Below, piece after piece: positions 41,361-49,214 of a stretch of DNA of 64,000 bases; the stretch's first letter is position 1; each line of letters starts with the position of its first letter. This DNA comes from Oopsacas minuta. Its lineage: Eukaryota; Animalia; Porifera. The position numbers and the translations under genes are program-made. Location of the stretch: positions 791,690 through 855,689 of the forward strand of contig JAKMXF010000354.1 in assembly GCA_024704765.1 (NCBI GenBank). Direction: 5' to 3'. The notes beneath the pieces are model-generated. The model was not told the origin of the DNA. It was given only the letters and a program-made list of their open reading frames with translations, and searched no databases.

Positions 41361-41859
41361 ATATAGTATTTGGTATCTGTTTGTTGTCAATAATAATAAT
41401 TAGCTGCGATAGAACTCACGTTTTAGATCTTTGAATGCGTTTGTTTGAAATATCTTTTCTCTAAGCTAATAATTATGAAAGAAAGAAATATTATGATCTA
41501 TAAAGAGATTAATATTGAGTAAATAAATAGAAATAATAGAATAAAACGAGCCTAGTATGACCTTATACAATTGTAGGGTGAAGGAAACATCTCACAATTG
41601 AAAGCACTTAGACCTAATGAGGAAATGGAATGTATAGAATGTGTAAGTACATACACCAGGCTATACGTGGCACTATGATTATATACATATTTGAACAAGA
41701 GGTGAATATAATATATAAGGTATAACTTATTGAGTCGAGGAGAGCTTGAAAGGATTCTAGAATTGTTAGGAAAACAAACTAGTTAATCCGATAAAGAATT
41801 CGAAAAACTATGCAAATTGTCGCTAGGAGATTTGTTGCCAATGTTTAATGACGGAATAT

Positions 41860-43857
41860 TTAAGTATGTGTGAGTCCTAGTAACCAAGGTTGCGGATTGA
41901 AATGTGTTCCAAACGAGAAACAATTCCCACCTCCCCCTATTACTAACAGCTGTCGTCCCTTATCCACTAGCTCTGCACTGAAGTTGTAAGGCAAAAAACT
42001 TCTAAGAGGGGAATAGAGTGAACAAAGGTTTGTATCTGTCCAAGAACGATTATCTAAGTTGATTACAAGAAGGTGATAATAACAAGGTGAGTGTAGCTCC
42101 ACACCTCCTAATGAGTAGATTATGGAACCCTTTATAACAGCAGAATGCGAGTATCGAGCAGGGAGAGGGGGATCGAATTGTACACAATTCCACACAGGAG
42201 ATATCTCCTTATAAGGTAGCATAAGCAGGTGAGATGAAGGTGTTAACATTCGCGTTAATCCTCCATACACAATCAATAAATCATTCCAAATAACTGCAGT
42301 ATGAGAATGAACCTGAGCTAAATAACCTGAATCCTTTGATAGCATTAATCTCCATGAGTGTGTACTCATATCTAATAACCATGTATCACTATGTACCAAG
42401 CCTCCTAAACTAACACCACCATGAATAAGTAGAGATACACTACTCTCTGATACCACTGTGTTGGCAGAATGTCTCCATCTGGGTTCTGGAGTTACGTCAC
42501 CAAGACTGAGCTTATTCCAAAAATACTGTTTCTCTTCGCTAACACAGTCTAGGGACAGGAGATAAGTGTGAATATTTGGAGCTTTAGGAGATTTCCTCCC
42601 ACCCACAAGCACTATAGACCCATCCGGTAGAGTACTAAGGGTGCAGTGCATTAGACCACCAGGGCCCTCTCCTCTGATTTCAACTGGGACACATTTACAG
42701 TCAATGCTTTTGCCACTAAATGATAACCTGACTTCTGCGGAGCTATTCACCCTCCCATGAATCCCACCACTCCCATATCCTCCAAATAAGAACACAGACT
42801 CTGTTACAGGGTTATAACATGAGGCGTGACTGTGTCGTAACAGCAGTGCTGAGTGTGGGAGGGATTGATATGTGAGATAAGAAGGAGATAGAGTAGAGAG
42901 GGTAGAGTGAGAGGATACGGGATCACTGGGAGGGGATAGTGAAGCAATAAACTCTGTACCCTTCGCCCTCCCTGCTAGCAGTACCGTGTAGTGATTACAC
43001 TTCTGATGCCATTCTTCATACTCGTCAAACGGCTCTAAGCTCTGTATTCTGATAACCTCATCCTCTAGAAGAGAGGTGTGGTTGTAGAAGAATGAATTCA
43101 TATCCACTGATCTCACGTGCTCATAAGCTAGATGTAGGAATCGAGTTTCTTGCTCCAGAGGGGTCTCATAATCAGCTGCAGTGTAGAGAAGAGATCCTAT
43201 ACTCTGATAGTGATGCATCATAACTAGTCCGAATGGATCATGTGTATACACCTGCTCATATATAAAGAAACATAGGTTTGGGAAGTTTAGTGCAGCCCAT
43301 TTTATGAGACGAGAGGATTGAGAGGGTCGCATATATGTGAGCACTACTTCTGAGACGAATAAGGTTGGGAGCAATAAGTCGAAGTCTGGGATAGCTCGCA
43401 ATTTAGAGAGGAGAGCTTTTGTGTCTCTTAAATCCTGTCCTAATAAATAACATCCATCTCCATCATACCCTGAAGCAGTTAGCAGCCTCTTCTTGTTCTC
43501 CATAACGAGTGGGAAATCAACCTCCACAAACGTTACACCTTCTACCAACCCCTCACTCCTCAGACGGAGATAAGCAGTATCAAATCCAGCTCCTAGCACG
43601 ACTATCTGTGTTCTCACCCCACTACTCCTTCCCCATCTACAGAACGAGGTCAGCACGTGTTGAATAGCTCTGTTACGGATATAGTAGCCCCAGTGGATAA
43701 TTGGAGCACGACGACTCAACTTAGACACGAAGTGCTTGACAAACGGGTCAGCAAAATAGCCAGCTTGACAAGTAGAGCATTTGCTAACCATACTGTAGTC
43801 ATTAGTACCTTGTACAGCGTTTGGTTTGAGAAGAGAGAGAGGTGGAATGGAAGACAT
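41860..43857 (-). CDS. LCMT2: Leucine carboxyl methyltransferase 2 / tRNA wybutosine-synthesizing protein 4 (LCM + Kelch)
   Basis: AVQGTNDYSMVSK...GYFADPF...RRAPIIHWGYYIR, QIVVLGAGFDTAYLRL, EPFDEYEEWHQKCNHY, then Kelch-like repeats (GGRKSP, PRWRHSA, ARYSHSA), GGGGNCFSFGTHFN. Confidence 0.95.
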   Translation of the reverse strand: MSSIPPLSLLKPNAVQGTNDYSMVSKCSTCQAGYFADPFVKHFVSKLSRRAPIIHWGYYIRNRAIQHVLTSFCRWGRSSGVRTQIVVLGAGFDTAYLRLRSEGLVEGVTFVEVDFPLVMENKKRLLTASGYDGDGCYLLGQDLRDTKALLSKLRAIPDFDLLLPTLFVSEVVLTYMRPSQSSRLIKWAALNFPNLCFFIYEQVYTHDPFGLVMMHHYQSIGSLLYTAADYETPLEQETRFLHLAYEHVRSVDMNSFFYNHTSLLEDEVIRIQSLEPFDEYEEWHQKCNHYTVLLAGRAKGTEFIASLSPPSDPVSSHSTLSTLSPSYLTYQSLPHSALLLRHSHASCYNPVTESVFLFGGYGSGGIHGRVNSSAEVRLSFSGKSIDCKCVPVEIRGEGPGGLMHCTLSTLPDGSIVLVGGRKSPKAPNIHTYLLSLDCVSEEKQYFWNKLSLGDVTPEPRWRHSANTVVSESSVSLLIHGGVSLGGLVHSDTWLLDMSTHSWRLMLSKDSGYLAQVHSHTAVIWNDLLIVYGGLTRMLTPSSHLLMLPYKEISPVWNCVQFDPPLPARYSHSAVIKGSIIYSLGGVELHSPCYYHLLVINLDNRSWTDTNLCSLYSPLRSFLPYNFSAELVDKGRQLLVIGGGGNCFSFGTHFNPQPWLLGLTHT

Positions 43858-44821
43858 GAGATAGATAGCGGGAGAGATTACTACAAGTTAGCATATAATG
43901 CGAAAATATTGGGTCAATGGATGGAATTACGATAGCCAATATTGTTCACAAATATTCCTATAAATATAGTAGTAGAATTTTGTGCTAATTACAAAGAAAT
44001 GTACTGAAGAATCCTTATAAGAATTGCTATCGCCGGGAACAAATACCGTCAAAATCTCAAATGGTGTATGGACAATACAGAGCAAAACAAACATTTCCAA
44101 ATTGAATAGTAACTTATCTACTGAGCTGAACACAATGCAATCATTAGCAAAAATATATAATAATAAGCCATATGAAGTAATATACTTGTTTCCAATCCCC
44201 ACCCGCCCAAATTTTGTCCCCTGTCCGGAAGGATTGCATTTATATTTTTCCAAATTTATAGCTTATTCTTTGGTTAAAACATTATGCAATCCACATTTTA
44301 CTACTAGTATATTAAAAAATTCAATTATTTTATACCCAGAAAGAATGTGATGAGACAATTGAAGGGTCATCTTATTAACATATTAACTGGCGATAAAAAA
44401 TAAAAATAAAAAAAGTCCGCCGTCCCAGTTTCCGAAGAAATTCCGGATGAGAAACAAGTAAATTATCTCACATGGCCTAATCCTACTTTATATTTAGCTG
44501 GAGTATTTATAAATCAAGGAATGTCACTTCACAACATAACACGGGTGACGATATCCTTAGCTGAAATATGGGCAGTAAAGAAAAAGAACGATGCCATACT
44601 TCAAAGGGAAACATGTAAATTGAGTCTGTATAATGTAATAATATCTGTATTTAAATAATTAGATCACTCAAGGGTCACATCAAAGTTTAGTTTTGTACAG
44701 AAATAAATTATGAAAACAGTTAAAAGGTGTAAAGTCGTAGTTTACGGTAAAGTATATTACGCGACATATTCCATAAACTATAATAAATAACAATTTCCAA
44801 TCTCCAAATAATGCACAGTAA

Positions 44822-46162
44822 TTATCCAAAATATACAATTCCTGATGTAAAGTCTAACCAAGCACCAAGTGAATTGAAAATGTACAGATCTGCTAAAGTG
44901 AATGTGAGGTTAGTGAGAAGGATCAGGAAATAGTTTCCAGTGTTATGTTCACAAGGGATCGGACAGGGACGAGACTTCACGCAAATGCTAAGTGTATCAG
45001 CCAAGTAATTGCGAATCGTATTCTCACACATTGCTAATAGCAAGATTGTGAAGATGATAAAATATACAATTTTTAGTGATGCCATAAATTCTAACTCTAA
45101 ATTGTAGATGTAGAGAGAAGCCTTGAGCTCGGTAGTTACAATTATTCCAGCCAGAATGTAGGAAATTACAGCAGCAATTGGGCGGCCGAATATGTGAAAA
45201 GGAAAGTAGATATAGGTCCTGATAAAGTTTAGGCAGGGGATGTTCCAGTTGAATAGGATGTCTAGAAACGAGTGAGGTAGCTCTGTATGTATAGGTTTGG
45301 AAACAGAGAAGGATACTTTGTTTGGATTGAATAAAAGTAGTGTAGATATCTGCTGGGTCCCTGAAGATACAAGAGTCAGCTGTTGTAGCGAGTTTAGCGA
45401 ATATTTAAGGGAGCGGATTCCGAAGAAGACACAAAGAGTTGGAATTGGGAGAAGGTCACTTACTTTTACAAGAGCTATCCCTACAGCCATAAATAGCACT
45501 GATAATATGGCAGATGACGTCAACGTCAAGATACGCTTAGAGTTTGTATTCTTGAGTAAAGTGATCGTTTGATGTTCTTTGAGTGTGATGAATGGACCTA
45601 GGAGTATATTAGCAGGCGAAAAGAGATAGCCAAGATATTCAATAAATGTTGGTATAAGTTTGAAATCTACATCTGAAACCAAAATGGAGGATCGAGATCT
45701 CTTGGATAAAGAAATTTTTTGTTTTCGAATGTCCTGAGGTAAAGAATATATTTTCATGAATAACGTTAGGAATGTTATTTGAGATAAAAATGGCTGTGTA
45801 GATAAATATCCGATGAAAGGCCATGTTTCTACATGATATCCGGTAGAATGTAATGATACTAGGAAGTATGCAGTTACAGGTAAGAACAGGGAGAGTATGA
45901 TCCGTGCTCCTCTTAGAAACAGAATTAAGTAGGAAAGAGTTGCAATGAGGAGGTAGGAATAGATAATATGGTTCACAGCTCCGAATGCAAGAAACAGTGT
46001 AATTACACCGGATATAGTGAGTAGGATGTTACATTTATTGGGCGATATTTTGAGAATATTGATGATATGGAAAATACAGATTGGGATGATTATAAATGGT
46101 AGAAGAGTGGATAAATGTCCAATAATTCTAAGGAATGTCATTAATGTTAATTCTTTTAGCAT
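44822..46162 (-). CDS. PORCN: Porcupine-like MBOAT membrane protein, catalytic His absent (candidate pseudoenzyme)
   Basis: EYLGYLFSPANILLGPFI, VSKPIHTELPHSFLDILFNWNIP and LADTLSICVKSRPCPIPCEH align with PORCN ([43 protein letters not shown]). Hydrophobic, multi-pass. Confidence 0.75.
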   Translation of the reverse strand: MLKELTLMTFLRIIGHLSTLLPFIIIPICIFHIINILKISPNKCNILLTISGVITLFLAFGAVNHIIYSYLLIATLSYLILFLRGARIILSLFLPVTAYFLVSLHSTGYHVETWPFIGYLSTQPFLSQITFLTLFMKIYSLPQDIRKQKISLSKRSRSSILVSDVDFKLIPTFIEYLGYLFSPANILLGPFITLKEHQTITLLKNTNSKRILTLTSSAILSVLFMAVGIALVKVSDLLPIPTLCVFFGIRSLKYSLNSLQQLTLVSSGTQQISTLLLFNPNKVSFSVSKPIHTELPHSFLDILFNWNIPCLNFIRTYIYFPFHIFGRPIAAVISYILAGIIVTTELKASLYIYNLELEFMASLKIVYFIIFTILLLAMCENTIRNYLADTLSICVKSRPCPIPCEHNTGNYFLILLTNLTFTLADLYIFNSLGAWLDFTSGIVYFG

Positions 46163-47813
46163 TCTGACAGATGTATCTAGCTGAAATAATCAACATTGAA
46201 TTAGGTGTACAATTAACACAGAGCCTAGAAAAGATTGCCTTACCCACTCCAGTTCCTATAACCCTGCAATTACAATTATTGAGGGGGAGCTGGATAGGGT
46301 GTCTATATAAGGACACATGATTTTAAATTATATATCAAGTATATATAATCGGGATTCATTCTTTACAAATGCATTCAATTTAGACTGGACACTTCCATAT
46401 GGACGCAGATTGCCAAAGAATATCTAATTGCCTCCAAATAACGTCAACTGTCAAGTGAGTTATTAATATATTGGCTATATTTGTGGCGTTCCTTTCTATA
46501 CATAATCTAATAAAATCAAAACTGAATTGTGTTAGACATAATGTTAGTGGTTAACATTCGAGTACTATCTCTATCTAATCGTCTTCTTGTCGAATCGATT
46601 CACTTACTACAATATATGTCTCGTGTTTTGGAGATAGAGCAACAAATACTATAGGACTCTGTGATACCTTGTCAGTTAGTACTATTCGCTGTCTGAAAGT
46701 CCTATAACTCTGCATTCCATTCTTCCACTTATGTATTTCATCGTTCCGCCATATAATGTAATGGTTTCGCCATAGATTGTATAACAATACAAGAACTTTG
46801 TGTTTTAGAGTTTCTTATAACAATTCAGACCTTTGTGAATTTAATTAGTTTCTTGTGAAAATGACTGATCATCATTTCTTATTCTTTATACTTTCCCTCA
46901 CACAACTTACCAATAATCTCATTATTTTATCCTATTTTTGGAAGCATCATCATCTTCTTGTGATTGGTTATCATTCAGCAGACGAAATTGTATTACTATA
47001 TACTGTATAGACTGTCTATACTGAGTGACCCTTGTGTAGTTGACACATGAGCCATAAGATTGATCGAAACCTAACCAACGGGACCCTCTCCTACACCCAC
47101 GAAATGAAATGATGTTCATTTTATTTCTCTGATTTCTTTTCTAATTATGTGTAATTTTCCTTAATTACTTATAAAGATAGAGCAATATACACTCAGTCAC
47201 TTACTATAATAAGCTACATACAAACACGTTGTCTTGTCTTGTGTATGATTGCCCTCCAGACTAGATTGTAATCATTTTACAGTCTTATTTGTTAATCAAT
47301 ATCCTTAAAATCCACGAAGGGAATCTATAGTTTTTCAAACAAAACAGCTGTTAATATGACTATCTCATTAATTTATAGAAATCTTAGATATTAATTGGCG
47401 ATAATCGTTATTTTCATATCACGATGATAGACACTCGGTGAAATATTTCTTATATCAGGACAGAGTTCGATGGTAAAAGGTTTGTACTTATTTACATCGA
47501 CTTCCTTTTATATATTAACATGATCTGTATATTGTTAATATAAGAATTCAGTATACAAAATTTCGCGTGAAGTACCATGTTTCTACACTTTCAAACTGAG
47601 TCCCTTTCTTTTGTTATTATGAATACTTTCAGCATCACACTATGAAGAGCAAGCCGTATAACATGGGAATCCGGTTCTTCACTTTGCGATTAACTATTCT
47701 ATTATTAATCAAATGAACTCTTCTATGTTCAATAGGTAATACTTGTCAATATAAATATCTGCTAACTGCGGACTAAATAATGGTTGGATATTTGGCTTTA
47801 AGTAAACTACAAG

Positions 47814-49214
47814 ATGTATCTGTTGACGTACTACCTTCTTCTCCTATCTCTCTTTCTTGCTGGAGTTTCATGTGGGGATCTTCAATCTGAAGATGAGACT
47901 GACTCTATTTGCAATGGAGATTTTGACTTTTATTTCTTACTCGATAAGTCGGGTAGTATAGGAGATGATTTTCCAGTTTATATCGTACCGTTTGTGGAGA
48001 AAGTAGTGGATAGTCTGATTAGCGATAAGATTCGTATCTCTTATATAGTCTATTCGTATGATGCTGTGGTAATCCTAGAAATTACAAATGATGAAGAGAA
48101 GATACTCAATGGATTGGAAGATCTCAGGAATGTGTATGCTGATGGAGGTACGGTTATCAGTACTGGGCTAGATGAGATTAGATATGCTATGAAGTATAAT
48201 GGAACAAATCGTGCGGCTGTAATTCTCGCGGTTACTGACGGTCAAGATAACGATATGACATCTGCGTTAAAAGCAGCCAATTTGGTGAGAAGTTTAGGAG
48301 CTAGTATTTTCGCGATTGGAGTTGGACAGGAAGTATCTTATGAGCAGCTAACCTACATTGCTGATAGTCCCTCTTCTACACATGTAATCATGATAGATGA
48401 CTTTGGAGGATTAGATGACATCATAAATACAGTAGTCAATAGAACTTGTATAGAGATTATAAGTGCTGATCCTCTGGAGGAGTGTGTCATGGCTGAAGGG
48501 AATATAACATTAATTGGTCGGGGGTTTCAGAACGGAGATAACGCATCTAACATATTCTGTATCTATCATGTTAACACTACATTTCATTATTACACTAATG
48601 CATTTCCTGGATCAACTAATCAAGTTATCAAATGTCCTCTCCCTTATGTAGAGGAACCCTCCCAGGTCTTAATACAGGTATCTCTCAATGGACTATCCTA
48701 TGTATCCAGTAATGTTACACTTACGTTTCGATACTGTGTGCCTATTGACTGGACTCTAATCTTTTCCATCCTCGGCTCTCTGCTTTTGTTTCTACTAGCG
48801 CTCTTACTTTGTTTCCTCTGGTTCTTATGGCCTGTTATAACTGGCGTGACGTATAAAATGCCTGCTAAGTATGTGGACCCTGCGCCCCTTCCCCCGCCCC
48901 CCGAGCCTAGAAAGTGGCCTGTGGTTAACGCCTCACTCTACGGGAGACCAGGTGCTGGGGGTATGATGCCTACACGAGTGGGGTGGGGCAATACAGGAGC
49001 CACAGAGATGGGGGCTAAACTGATGAAAGCTAAAGATGGAGTTATTTTGAGAGAGGAATCTTCCCCACTCGTAGAATTGGATCAACCTGAAATCGAGAAG
49101 AGATCCTTTTGTAATAAATGTTGTGAGCCTTTTTCCAGATGCTATCATTGTATCCAGTCTGTTAGACCGATCCGTGGTGATGATGGGAAATGGTTCTCAT
49201 GGAAAAAACTTTAG
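47814..49214 (+). CDS. ANTXR1: Anthrax toxin receptor-like type I membrane protein (signal peptide, vWA, Ig-like, TM, cytoplasmic)
   Basis: CNGDFDFYFLLDKSGSI (MIDAS DxSxS), VTDG, TM, then PPPPEPRKWPVVNASLYG...RVGWGNTGATEMGAKLMKAK matching the ANTXR cytoplasmic motif. ANTXR1 versus ANTXR2 cannot be resolved. Confidence 0.88.
   Translation: MYLLTYYLLLLSLFLAGVSCGDLQSEDETDSICNGDFDFYFLLDKSGSIGDDFPVYIVPFVEKVVDSLISDKIRISYIVYSYDAVVILEITNDEEKILNGLEDLRNVYADGGTVISTGLDEIRYAMKYNGTNRAAVILAVTDGQDNDMTSALKAANLVRSLGASIFAIGVGQEVSYEQLTYIADSPSSTHVIMIDDFGGLDDIINTVVNRTCIEIISADPLEECVMAEGNITLIGRGFQNGDNASNIFCIYHVNTTFHYYTNAFPGSTNQVIKCPLPYVEEPSQVLIQVSLNGLSYVSSNVTLTFRYCVPIDWTLIFSILGSLLLFLLALLLCFLWFLWPVITGVTYKMPAKYVDPAPLPPPPEPRKWPVVNASLYGRPGAGGMMPTRVGWGNTGATEMGAKLMKAKDGVILREESSPLVELDQPEIEKRSFCNKCCEPFSRCYHCIQSVRPIRGDDGKWFSWKKL

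Follow-up and report, generated by a model that had tools for sequence, protein, structure and literature searches.

In the glass sponge Oopsacas minuta, the gene for porcupine (PORCN) is intact and under purifying selection, yet its product lacks both the catalytic histidine and the last transmembrane helix (TM) of the enzyme. PORCN is an O-acyltransferase of the endoplasmic reticulum (ER) membrane, which belongs to the MBOAT family and attaches palmitoleate to Wnt, and it is considered an enzyme that serves Wnt exclusively. We analyzed the gene in a 64,000-nucleotide stretch of the O. minuta genome (the window), which is part of contig JAKMXF010000354.1 (assembly GCA_024704765.1); the prefix JAKMXF denotes the whole-genome project of this species. 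An initial annotation, made from the letters of the window alone, had considered a glass sponge lacking Wnt, Wntless and Dishevelled as a possible host. The host is indeed such an animal, since the published analysis of the O. minuta genome finds none of the three (PMC10280926; also PMC5684314). Taken together, our data make it probable that the gene encodes a PORCN-derived pseudo-MBOAT, which has a Wnt-independent and probably non-catalytic role.

Loss of the catalytic histidine

The exact 446-amino acid protein is encoded on the O. minuta contig by an uninterrupted open reading frame (ORF). In assemblies of the ENA we found six full-length orthologues (P0002-P0007) with identities of 50-60%, as well as a broken copy (P0008). 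O. minuta and the six full-length relatives are called the clade in the following. The features of the catalytic region are:

44822..46162, minus strand: ORF of the PORCN orthologue, 446 amino acids, intronless, ATG start, no internal stop codons
45137..45139, minus strand: Val342 (codon GTA), catalytic-histidine column according to MAFFT and to a profile of 77 other PORCNs
45104..45106, minus strand: Tyr353 (codon TAC), alternative histidine column according to clade profiles (HMMER, hhalign)
45080..45133, minus strand: clade-specific insert of 18 amino acids (about residues 344-361) in the TM9-TM10 hairpin, directly after the histidine column
45128..45130, minus strand: Glu345, invariant in the clade, inside the insert and one helical turn past residue 342
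45194..45196, minus strand: His323, invariant in the clade, aligned with Arg in most other PORCNs

The catalytic histidine of PORCN is H341 in human isoform D, which corresponds to H335/H336 in the structure numbering. It is present at its column in 74 of the 77 other PORCNs and in none of the seven clade members, which carry V (O. minuta), I, V, T, L, L and F at this position. The O. minuta protein does not contain a single histidine between H323 of the FHIFG motif and H406 of the CEH motif (residues 324-405) and therefore, no alignment of the TM9-TM10 region can supply a catalytic histidine. Thus, the intact reading frame of 446 residues, the valine encoded at 45139-45137 and the histidine-free stretch between FHIFG and CEH, which had all been described in the initial annotation, were confirmed, and no other histidine can be placed at the catalytic position. 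The loss had been read there as a peculiarity of this genome. It is real, but it extends over the entire clade: loss of the histidine, the insert and the loss of TM11 are common to O. minuta and its six relatives.

Choosing between V342 and Y353 as counterpart of the catalytic histidine depends on the placement of the insert, for which about 17 residues had been estimated before and which comprises 18. MAFFT and the profile of the other PORCNs keep G326...S334-Y335 in register with the human G...T-Y. In the AlphaFold2 (AF2) model, a helix of 26 residues (327-352) runs straight through residue 342; a loop (353-358) and then a helix of 33 residues (359-391) come after it. This predicted arrangement fits a TM9-TM10 hairpin that is extended beyond the old catalytic position. 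Because the model helix runs through residue 342, V342 is the likelier structural equivalent, with the reservation that an alignment of this kind underlies the model. When the clade profiles are followed instead, the Y353 column reads Y, Y, H, Y, H, H, H. For O. minuta, P0002 and P0004, no candidate histidine emerges under either alignment, and P0002 and P0004 are free of histidine throughout the region.

Other positions around the catalytic center have also changed. The conserved Ser located four residues before the histidine (human S337) is replaced by A, T, T, T, I, A and T in the clade, and E345, T343 and H323 do not vary among the seven members. H323 was considered as a relocated catalytic histidine and not favored, with its column being Arg in most PORCNs and its position, judged by the helix register, being about three turns away from the catalytic center. 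More likely, this residue sits at the entrance for CoA. The asparagine in MCEN, where YVEH had been expected, is present, but it carries no evidential weight since PORCNs vary at the histidine of this motif, with E-N being found in Oscarella, Sycon and a nematode as well.

In mammalian PORCN, the H341A mutant is completely inactive (PMC3324524, PMC3464525). The alleles H341Y, W439X and W448X, which were found in focal dermal hypoplasia, have been characterized as "expressed but low activity" (Proffitt & Virshup, 2012, PMC3464525), and the N306A and S337A exchanges are tolerated by the mammalian enzyme.

Descent from PORCN

When the O. minuta protein was scanned against Pfam, no family was found at E-values up to 1, because the protein has diverged too far to be recognized by the MBOAT model. 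However, phmmer searches of the PDB sequences matched it to human PORCN (7ura, E 8.6e-8). With a profile of the clade, PORCN was the sole match among the PDB sequences (E 1.4e-18; E up to 1), although chains of HHAT, MBOAT7, LPCAT3, DGAT1, ACAT and DltB are present in the same bank. Protein searches based on a word index, in which the protein or the clade alignment served as query, returned only the clade and one nematode PORCN. When 1.84 billion protein representatives were searched exhaustively with a profile, 194 matches were obtained, and the best of them beyond the clade and one N-terminal fragment of 101 amino acids had an E-value of 6.6e-23. The named top matches were all porcupine proteins (Oscarella lobularis, Sycon ciliatum, Ephydatia muelleri, scallop, bugs, alligator, Saccoglossus, Priapulus). 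Conversely, the profile of the 77 other PORCNs recognized the seven clade members over nearly their full length (E 1e-45 to 1e-50).

Structural modeling led to the same family. From an alignment of 84 PORCN sequences, AF2 produced a model with a predicted local distance difference test score (pLDDT) of 87.2 and a predicted template modeling score (pTM) of 0.88; a model from a seven-sequence alignment (pLDDT 38.7) was discarded. The best structural match was 7ura with a Z-score of 35.8 and a root mean square deviation of 2.9 Å over 389 residues. MBOAT7 followed at a Z-score of 25.8 and then LPCAT3, DltB and HHAT. In Foldseek, the template modeling scores were 0.70-0.73 for PORCN and about 0.5 for other MBOATs. 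Since the input alignment consisted of PORCNs, the model is biased towards PORCN. In an 84-sequence tree, which involved PORCNs only and no outgroup, the seven sponge sequences were monophyletic (100*) and branched beside Oscarella, Sycon, an anemone and Ephydatia. We found only one PORCN copy, which corresponds to the one-copy-per-genome pattern of other PORCNs.

Taken together, these data indicate that the gene is PORCN by descent, and the assignment to this family made in the initial annotation stands. It is extremely improbable that a different MBOAT, for instance of the lysophospholipid acyltransferase type, has converged on PORCN-like motifs. The low identity of the clade to PORCNs (only 17-25%) and the PORCN-only composition of the tree and of the biased model alignment would be compatible with such an origin. 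However, the clade profile selects PORCN alone in a bank that holds the other MBOAT chains, all named top matches are porcupine, and the PORCN-specific motifs VSKP..ELPRS..WNxP and C-x5-C-x3-C-x-H have been kept.

Truncation and retained structural elements

Outside the catalytic histidine column, the protein shows one major loss and several retained elements:

44822..44824, minus strand: stop codon just past the equivalent of TM10; the protein lacks the TM10-TM11 loop of PORCN and its TM11
45242..45244, minus strand: Asn307 of the W-N-x-P motif, the MBOAT asparagine (human N306, isoform D), kept in 7/7 clade members
44945..44983, minus strand: C-x5-C-x3-C-x-H (C394, C400, C404, H406), aligned with the conserved Cys/His residues of PORCN

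All seven clade members end at positions 413-415 of the 455 positions of the other-PORCN profile. In human PORCN, the TM10-TM11 loop comprises residues 415-424, and the truncation thus coincides with the end of TM10; the O. minuta protein stops before the equivalent of human W439. A missed 3' exon encoding TM11 was considered and rejected, since only 180-965 bp separate the stop codon from the next gene and a profile search of these intervals found no TM11-like sequence. Hence, the missing C-terminal helix that had been noted before is a clade-wide property, which has left no remnant downstream.

The Cys3-His motif is likely to form a zinc site, as judged from its alignment with PORCN, and it is conserved in 6/7 clade members; P0005 carries Pro at the position of the histidine. 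The acyl-CoA pocket retains W306 and Y335, whereas human F312 and F245 are represented by Y319 and I249. Retention of Asn307 carries little weight because N306A is dispensable in mammalian PORCN.

Synteny and purifying selection

The relatives' assemblies share a common gene order (VWA/Anth_Ig, cyclin, PORCN, LCMT2/TYW4, ROCO/LRRK kinase), and O. minuta has the same order except for the cyclin. The immediate neighbors of PORCN in the window are:

41860..43857, minus strand: LCMT2/TYW4 (LCM and Kelch domains), downstream neighbor, used as synteny anchor and rate control
47880..49211, plus strand: VWA/Anth_Ig gene, upstream neighbor, used as synteny anchor

The LCMT2/TYW4-type neighbor is intronless, encodes 665 amino acids and shows 67-75% identity with the corresponding proteins of the six relatives.

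For unsaturated pairs within two subclades, the ratio of nonsynonymous to synonymous substitution rates (dN/dS) of PORCN was 0.27-0.36 (Nei-Gojobori, NG86). When O. minuta was compared with P0002 and P0004 (dS about 1.2), values of 0.24-0.25 were obtained. With dN/dS ratios of 0.24-0.36 and bootstrap 95% upper limits that were all <=0.53, the gene does not evolve neutrally. For LCMT2, the same pairs gave 0.15-0.23 and 0.13, respectively.

A sequencing run from 2024 (X5, "organism B") contained DNA about 96% identical to positions 41600-47500 of the O. minuta window, which probably originates from a closely related organism or from a population that has diverged. Here, 52/1437 sites differed in the PORCN ORF, compared with 58/909 in the intergenic DNA on its flanks (Fisher p = 0.0025); for LCMT2, 83/2229 differences were counted. 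This comparison suggests constraint within the O. minuta lineage itself.

The PORCN tree shows where most of the change is located. The stem of the clade measures 2.7 substitutions per site, the median tip 0.72 and the branches within the clade 0.04-0.27, and the O. minuta branch is not accelerated relative to its clade relatives. At the 60 positions that are >=80% conserved in other PORCNs, the clade has kept the residue in 28 cases and partly in 8, and it has lost the residue in 24. Ten of these 24 lost positions are invariant but different within the clade. A burst of change, which is followed by conservation and leaves conserved-but-different positions behind, is the signature of a shift in function and not of decay.

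Prior record of the gene

The presence of the gene in O. minuta is already published. It was recovered as Om_Porc (KU316203) from the O. minuta transcriptome by Schenkelaars et al. (2017; PMC5684314), whose only description of Porc is that of "a regular domain composition", and KU316203 corresponds with 100% identity to gene LOD99_12796 of Santini et al. (2023; PMC10280926). A transcript is therefore on record. The initial annotation is to be corrected in that the gene itself was on record since 2017; the loss of the histidine appears to be unreported in the literature searched. The texts of the two studies do not mention the catalytic histidine, and a literature search that combined PORCN/porcupine with hexactinellid terms returned nothing beyond them. 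Likewise, the clade-wide extent of the histidine loss, the insert, the truncation, the pattern of selection and rates, the synteny and a disrupted allele appear to be unreported in the literature searched. Our data refine the published description of the glass-sponge Porc.

Possible function of the protein

With the catalytic histidine and TM11 missing and the substrate reported absent, we do not class the protein as a functional Wnt acyltransferase. Since the histidine and the last helix were lost and the gene has nevertheless been selected in a Wnt-less animal, a job unrelated to Wnt is most likely. The suggestion that Porcupine outlived its substrate in this sponge, as a pseudoenzyme or in a new role, is supported by the fold, the histidine loss and the purifying selection, and none of the refuting conditions named with it that we examined was borne out. 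We propose the following scenario. On the stem of the clade, the catalytic histidine was swapped for a variable hydrophobic residue, an insert of 18 residues lengthened the TM9-TM10 hairpin at the catalytic center, and TM11 was lost together with its luminal loop. Afterwards, purifying selection kept the MBOAT fold, the Asn of W-N-x-P, the Cys3-His motif and most of the acyl-CoA pocket residues. Such a protein would no longer perform the canonical, His-dependent acyl transfer to Wnt, and its role in the ER membrane might be structural, lipid-binding, acyl-CoA-binding or partner-binding.

A possible, if unlikely, alternative is that the protein still is an active acyltransferase with a rewired site, in which E345, H323 or, in four relatives, His353 would act as base on a non-Wnt luminal substrate or a lipid. 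Such an enzyme would explain the purifying selection, the retention of Asn307 and the Cys3-His motif, of W306 and Y335 and of the Y319 and I249 equivalents, as well as the invariance of E345, T343 and H323 in 7/7 members, and the ten conserved-but-different positions would suggest a new specificity. However, the canonical histidine column is variable and hydrophobic, the Ser upstream of it is also variable, and His353 is not required since its column toggles between H and Y. In addition, the protein is truncated before the W439 equivalent, which in human PORCN results in low activity, and a candidate substrate is not known. A more specific form of this proposal is distinctly improbable. According to it, the insert would put the invariant E345 one helical turn past the former histidine into the luminal tunnel, where a non-Wnt acceptor would be acylated.

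Several observations weigh against a conserved pseudo-MBOAT in a Wnt-less clade. Catalytic inactivity is inferred by analogy from the mammalian mutants (H341A/Y/L and W439X), and the kind of new role is likewise an extrapolation. The exact equivalent of the catalytic histidine is ambiguous between V342 and Y353, the second of which is His in four relatives, and judging from their invariance E345 or H323 might substitute for it. Some MBOATs tolerate the loss of this residue; HHAT H379A, for instance, retains partial activity. Assignment of the six relatives to the glass sponges is derived from synteny and from the 67-75% identity of LCMT2. The four read runs that cover the region gave no RNA reads, and their contigs look like DNA since they also run through intergenic DNA. 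By dN/dS, PORCN is about 1.5-2 times more relaxed than LCMT2. A second contig of the sample that contains P0007 (L008:6001-9631), which is about 2% diverged and represents a haplotype or a close relative, carries a broken copy, in which 1 bp is deleted near codon 333 (GGTATTG to GGT-TTG) and 2.27 kb with a THAP9_C-like ORF are inserted near codon 442. P0005 has lost the histidine of the putative zinc site. Finally, the transcriptome of Aphrocallistes vastus yielded no porc (PMC5684314). Because of the broken copy, the loss in P0005 and the lack of porc in A. vastus, the protein may be dispensable in some lineages.

Some of these observations would also be expected if the gene were a relic that has been decaying slowly after the loss of Wnt, with its conservation resulting from recent or weak constraint or from an overlapping non-coding function. 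The dN/dS ratio above that of the neighboring gene, the allele broken by deletion and insertion and the lack of porc in A. vastus point in this direction, and so do the very long stem, the loss of half of the family-conserved positions and the failure of the Pfam MBOAT model to detect the O. minuta protein. Nevertheless, we consider a relic very unlikely. The ORFs are intact in seven assemblies at saturated synonymous divergence (dS 1.1 to above 3), no bootstrap upper limit of dN/dS exceeds 0.53, many positions are invariant in the clade, the AF2 fold is confident and a transcript is on record.

Comparison with known systems

The sponge protein shares with canonical PORCN (human 7URA, 9OO6) the MBOAT fold, the VSKP-ELPRS-WNxP block, Asn307, the Cys3-His motif and most residues of the acyl-CoA pocket. 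Other sponge and animal PORCNs are its nearest sequence relatives, and one copy per genome is found in both cases. In contrast to PORCN, the sponge clade lacks the catalytic histidine and the Ser preceding it, the TM10-TM11 loop and TM11, but has the insert of 18 amino acids and a stem of 2.7 substitutions per site, and its host O. minuta is reported to be devoid of Wnt, Wntless and Dishevelled.

To our knowledge, hints of another role of PORCN come only from a catalytically dead mutant that rescues the growth of human cancer cells. In these experiments, PORCN H341A rescued a Wnt-independent growth phenotype (Covey et al., 2012, PMC3324524), and this moonlighting indicates that a Wnt-independent role can exist without the catalytic histidine. 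Like the sponge protein as we picture it, the mutant is a His-less PORCN with a biological, Wnt-independent and possibly structural role in the ER. Unlike it, the mutant is an engineered variant of a canonical enzyme in transformed cells, and the link to the sponge is one of analogy. The alleles of focal dermal hypoplasia resemble the sponge protein, which natively carries Val or Tyr for His and ends before the W439 equivalent. However, they are deleterious loss-of-function alleles in humans, whereas the equivalent states are fixed and conserved in the sponge clade.

Within the MBOAT family, HHATL is a His-less mammalian paralogue of HHAT, in which an MBOAT has been retained as a non-catalytic protein. 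It differs from the sponge protein in belonging to another MBOAT subfamily and in having an active enzyme beside it; for the sponge, no PORCN copy other than this one was found. Two beetle proteins annotated as porcupine-like also lack the histidine: cluster P0050 of Nicrophorus vespilloides (H->L) and P0103 of Onthophagus taurus (XP_022915188, H->N). They are located in a long-branched beetle clade beside the His-keeping PORCNs of Tenebrio and Diabrotica, and they may be His-less PORCN paralogues in Wnt-bearing animals. With the sponge clade they share family membership and the loss at the histidine column, which reads Leu or Asn, but they lack the insert and their hosts have Wnt signaling.

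For a protein considered dedicated to Wnt, evolution has thus carried out a separation experiment: in animals reported to lack Wnt, Wntless and Dishevelled, PORCN has been left without its histidine and its last helix and yet is intact, syntenic and selected across deeply diverged genomes. This provides a concrete handle on a Wnt-independent function of PORCN, and the ten conserved-but-different positions mark where to look. Depending on whether the protein is inactive or not, a natural pseudo-MBOAT or a His-independent MBOAT is added to a family of drug-target enzymes. If the site were rewired, its acceptor would be the first natural substrate other than Wnt for a PORCN and the protein the first MBOAT that works without the catalytic histidine of the family.

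Additional observations at the locus

The cyclin gene of the relatives (Cyclin_N and Cyclin_C) is located between the VWA gene and PORCN in all six of them. In O. minuta, this interval corresponds to positions 46163-47879, and tblastn searches of the whole 64-kb window found no match to the cyclin gene. In the assembly that contains P0004, LCMT2/TYW4 (L005:7781-11128) is called in two pieces around an antisense ORF for a transposase of the Tc1/mariner type (HTH_Tnp_Tc3_2 and DDE_3). The spacer between PORCN and LCMT2 in O. minuta harbors a dispersed repeat (window positions 44200-44460), which was covered at a depth of about 1500 compared with about 100 nearby and at which every run had numerous alternative joints and loose ends.

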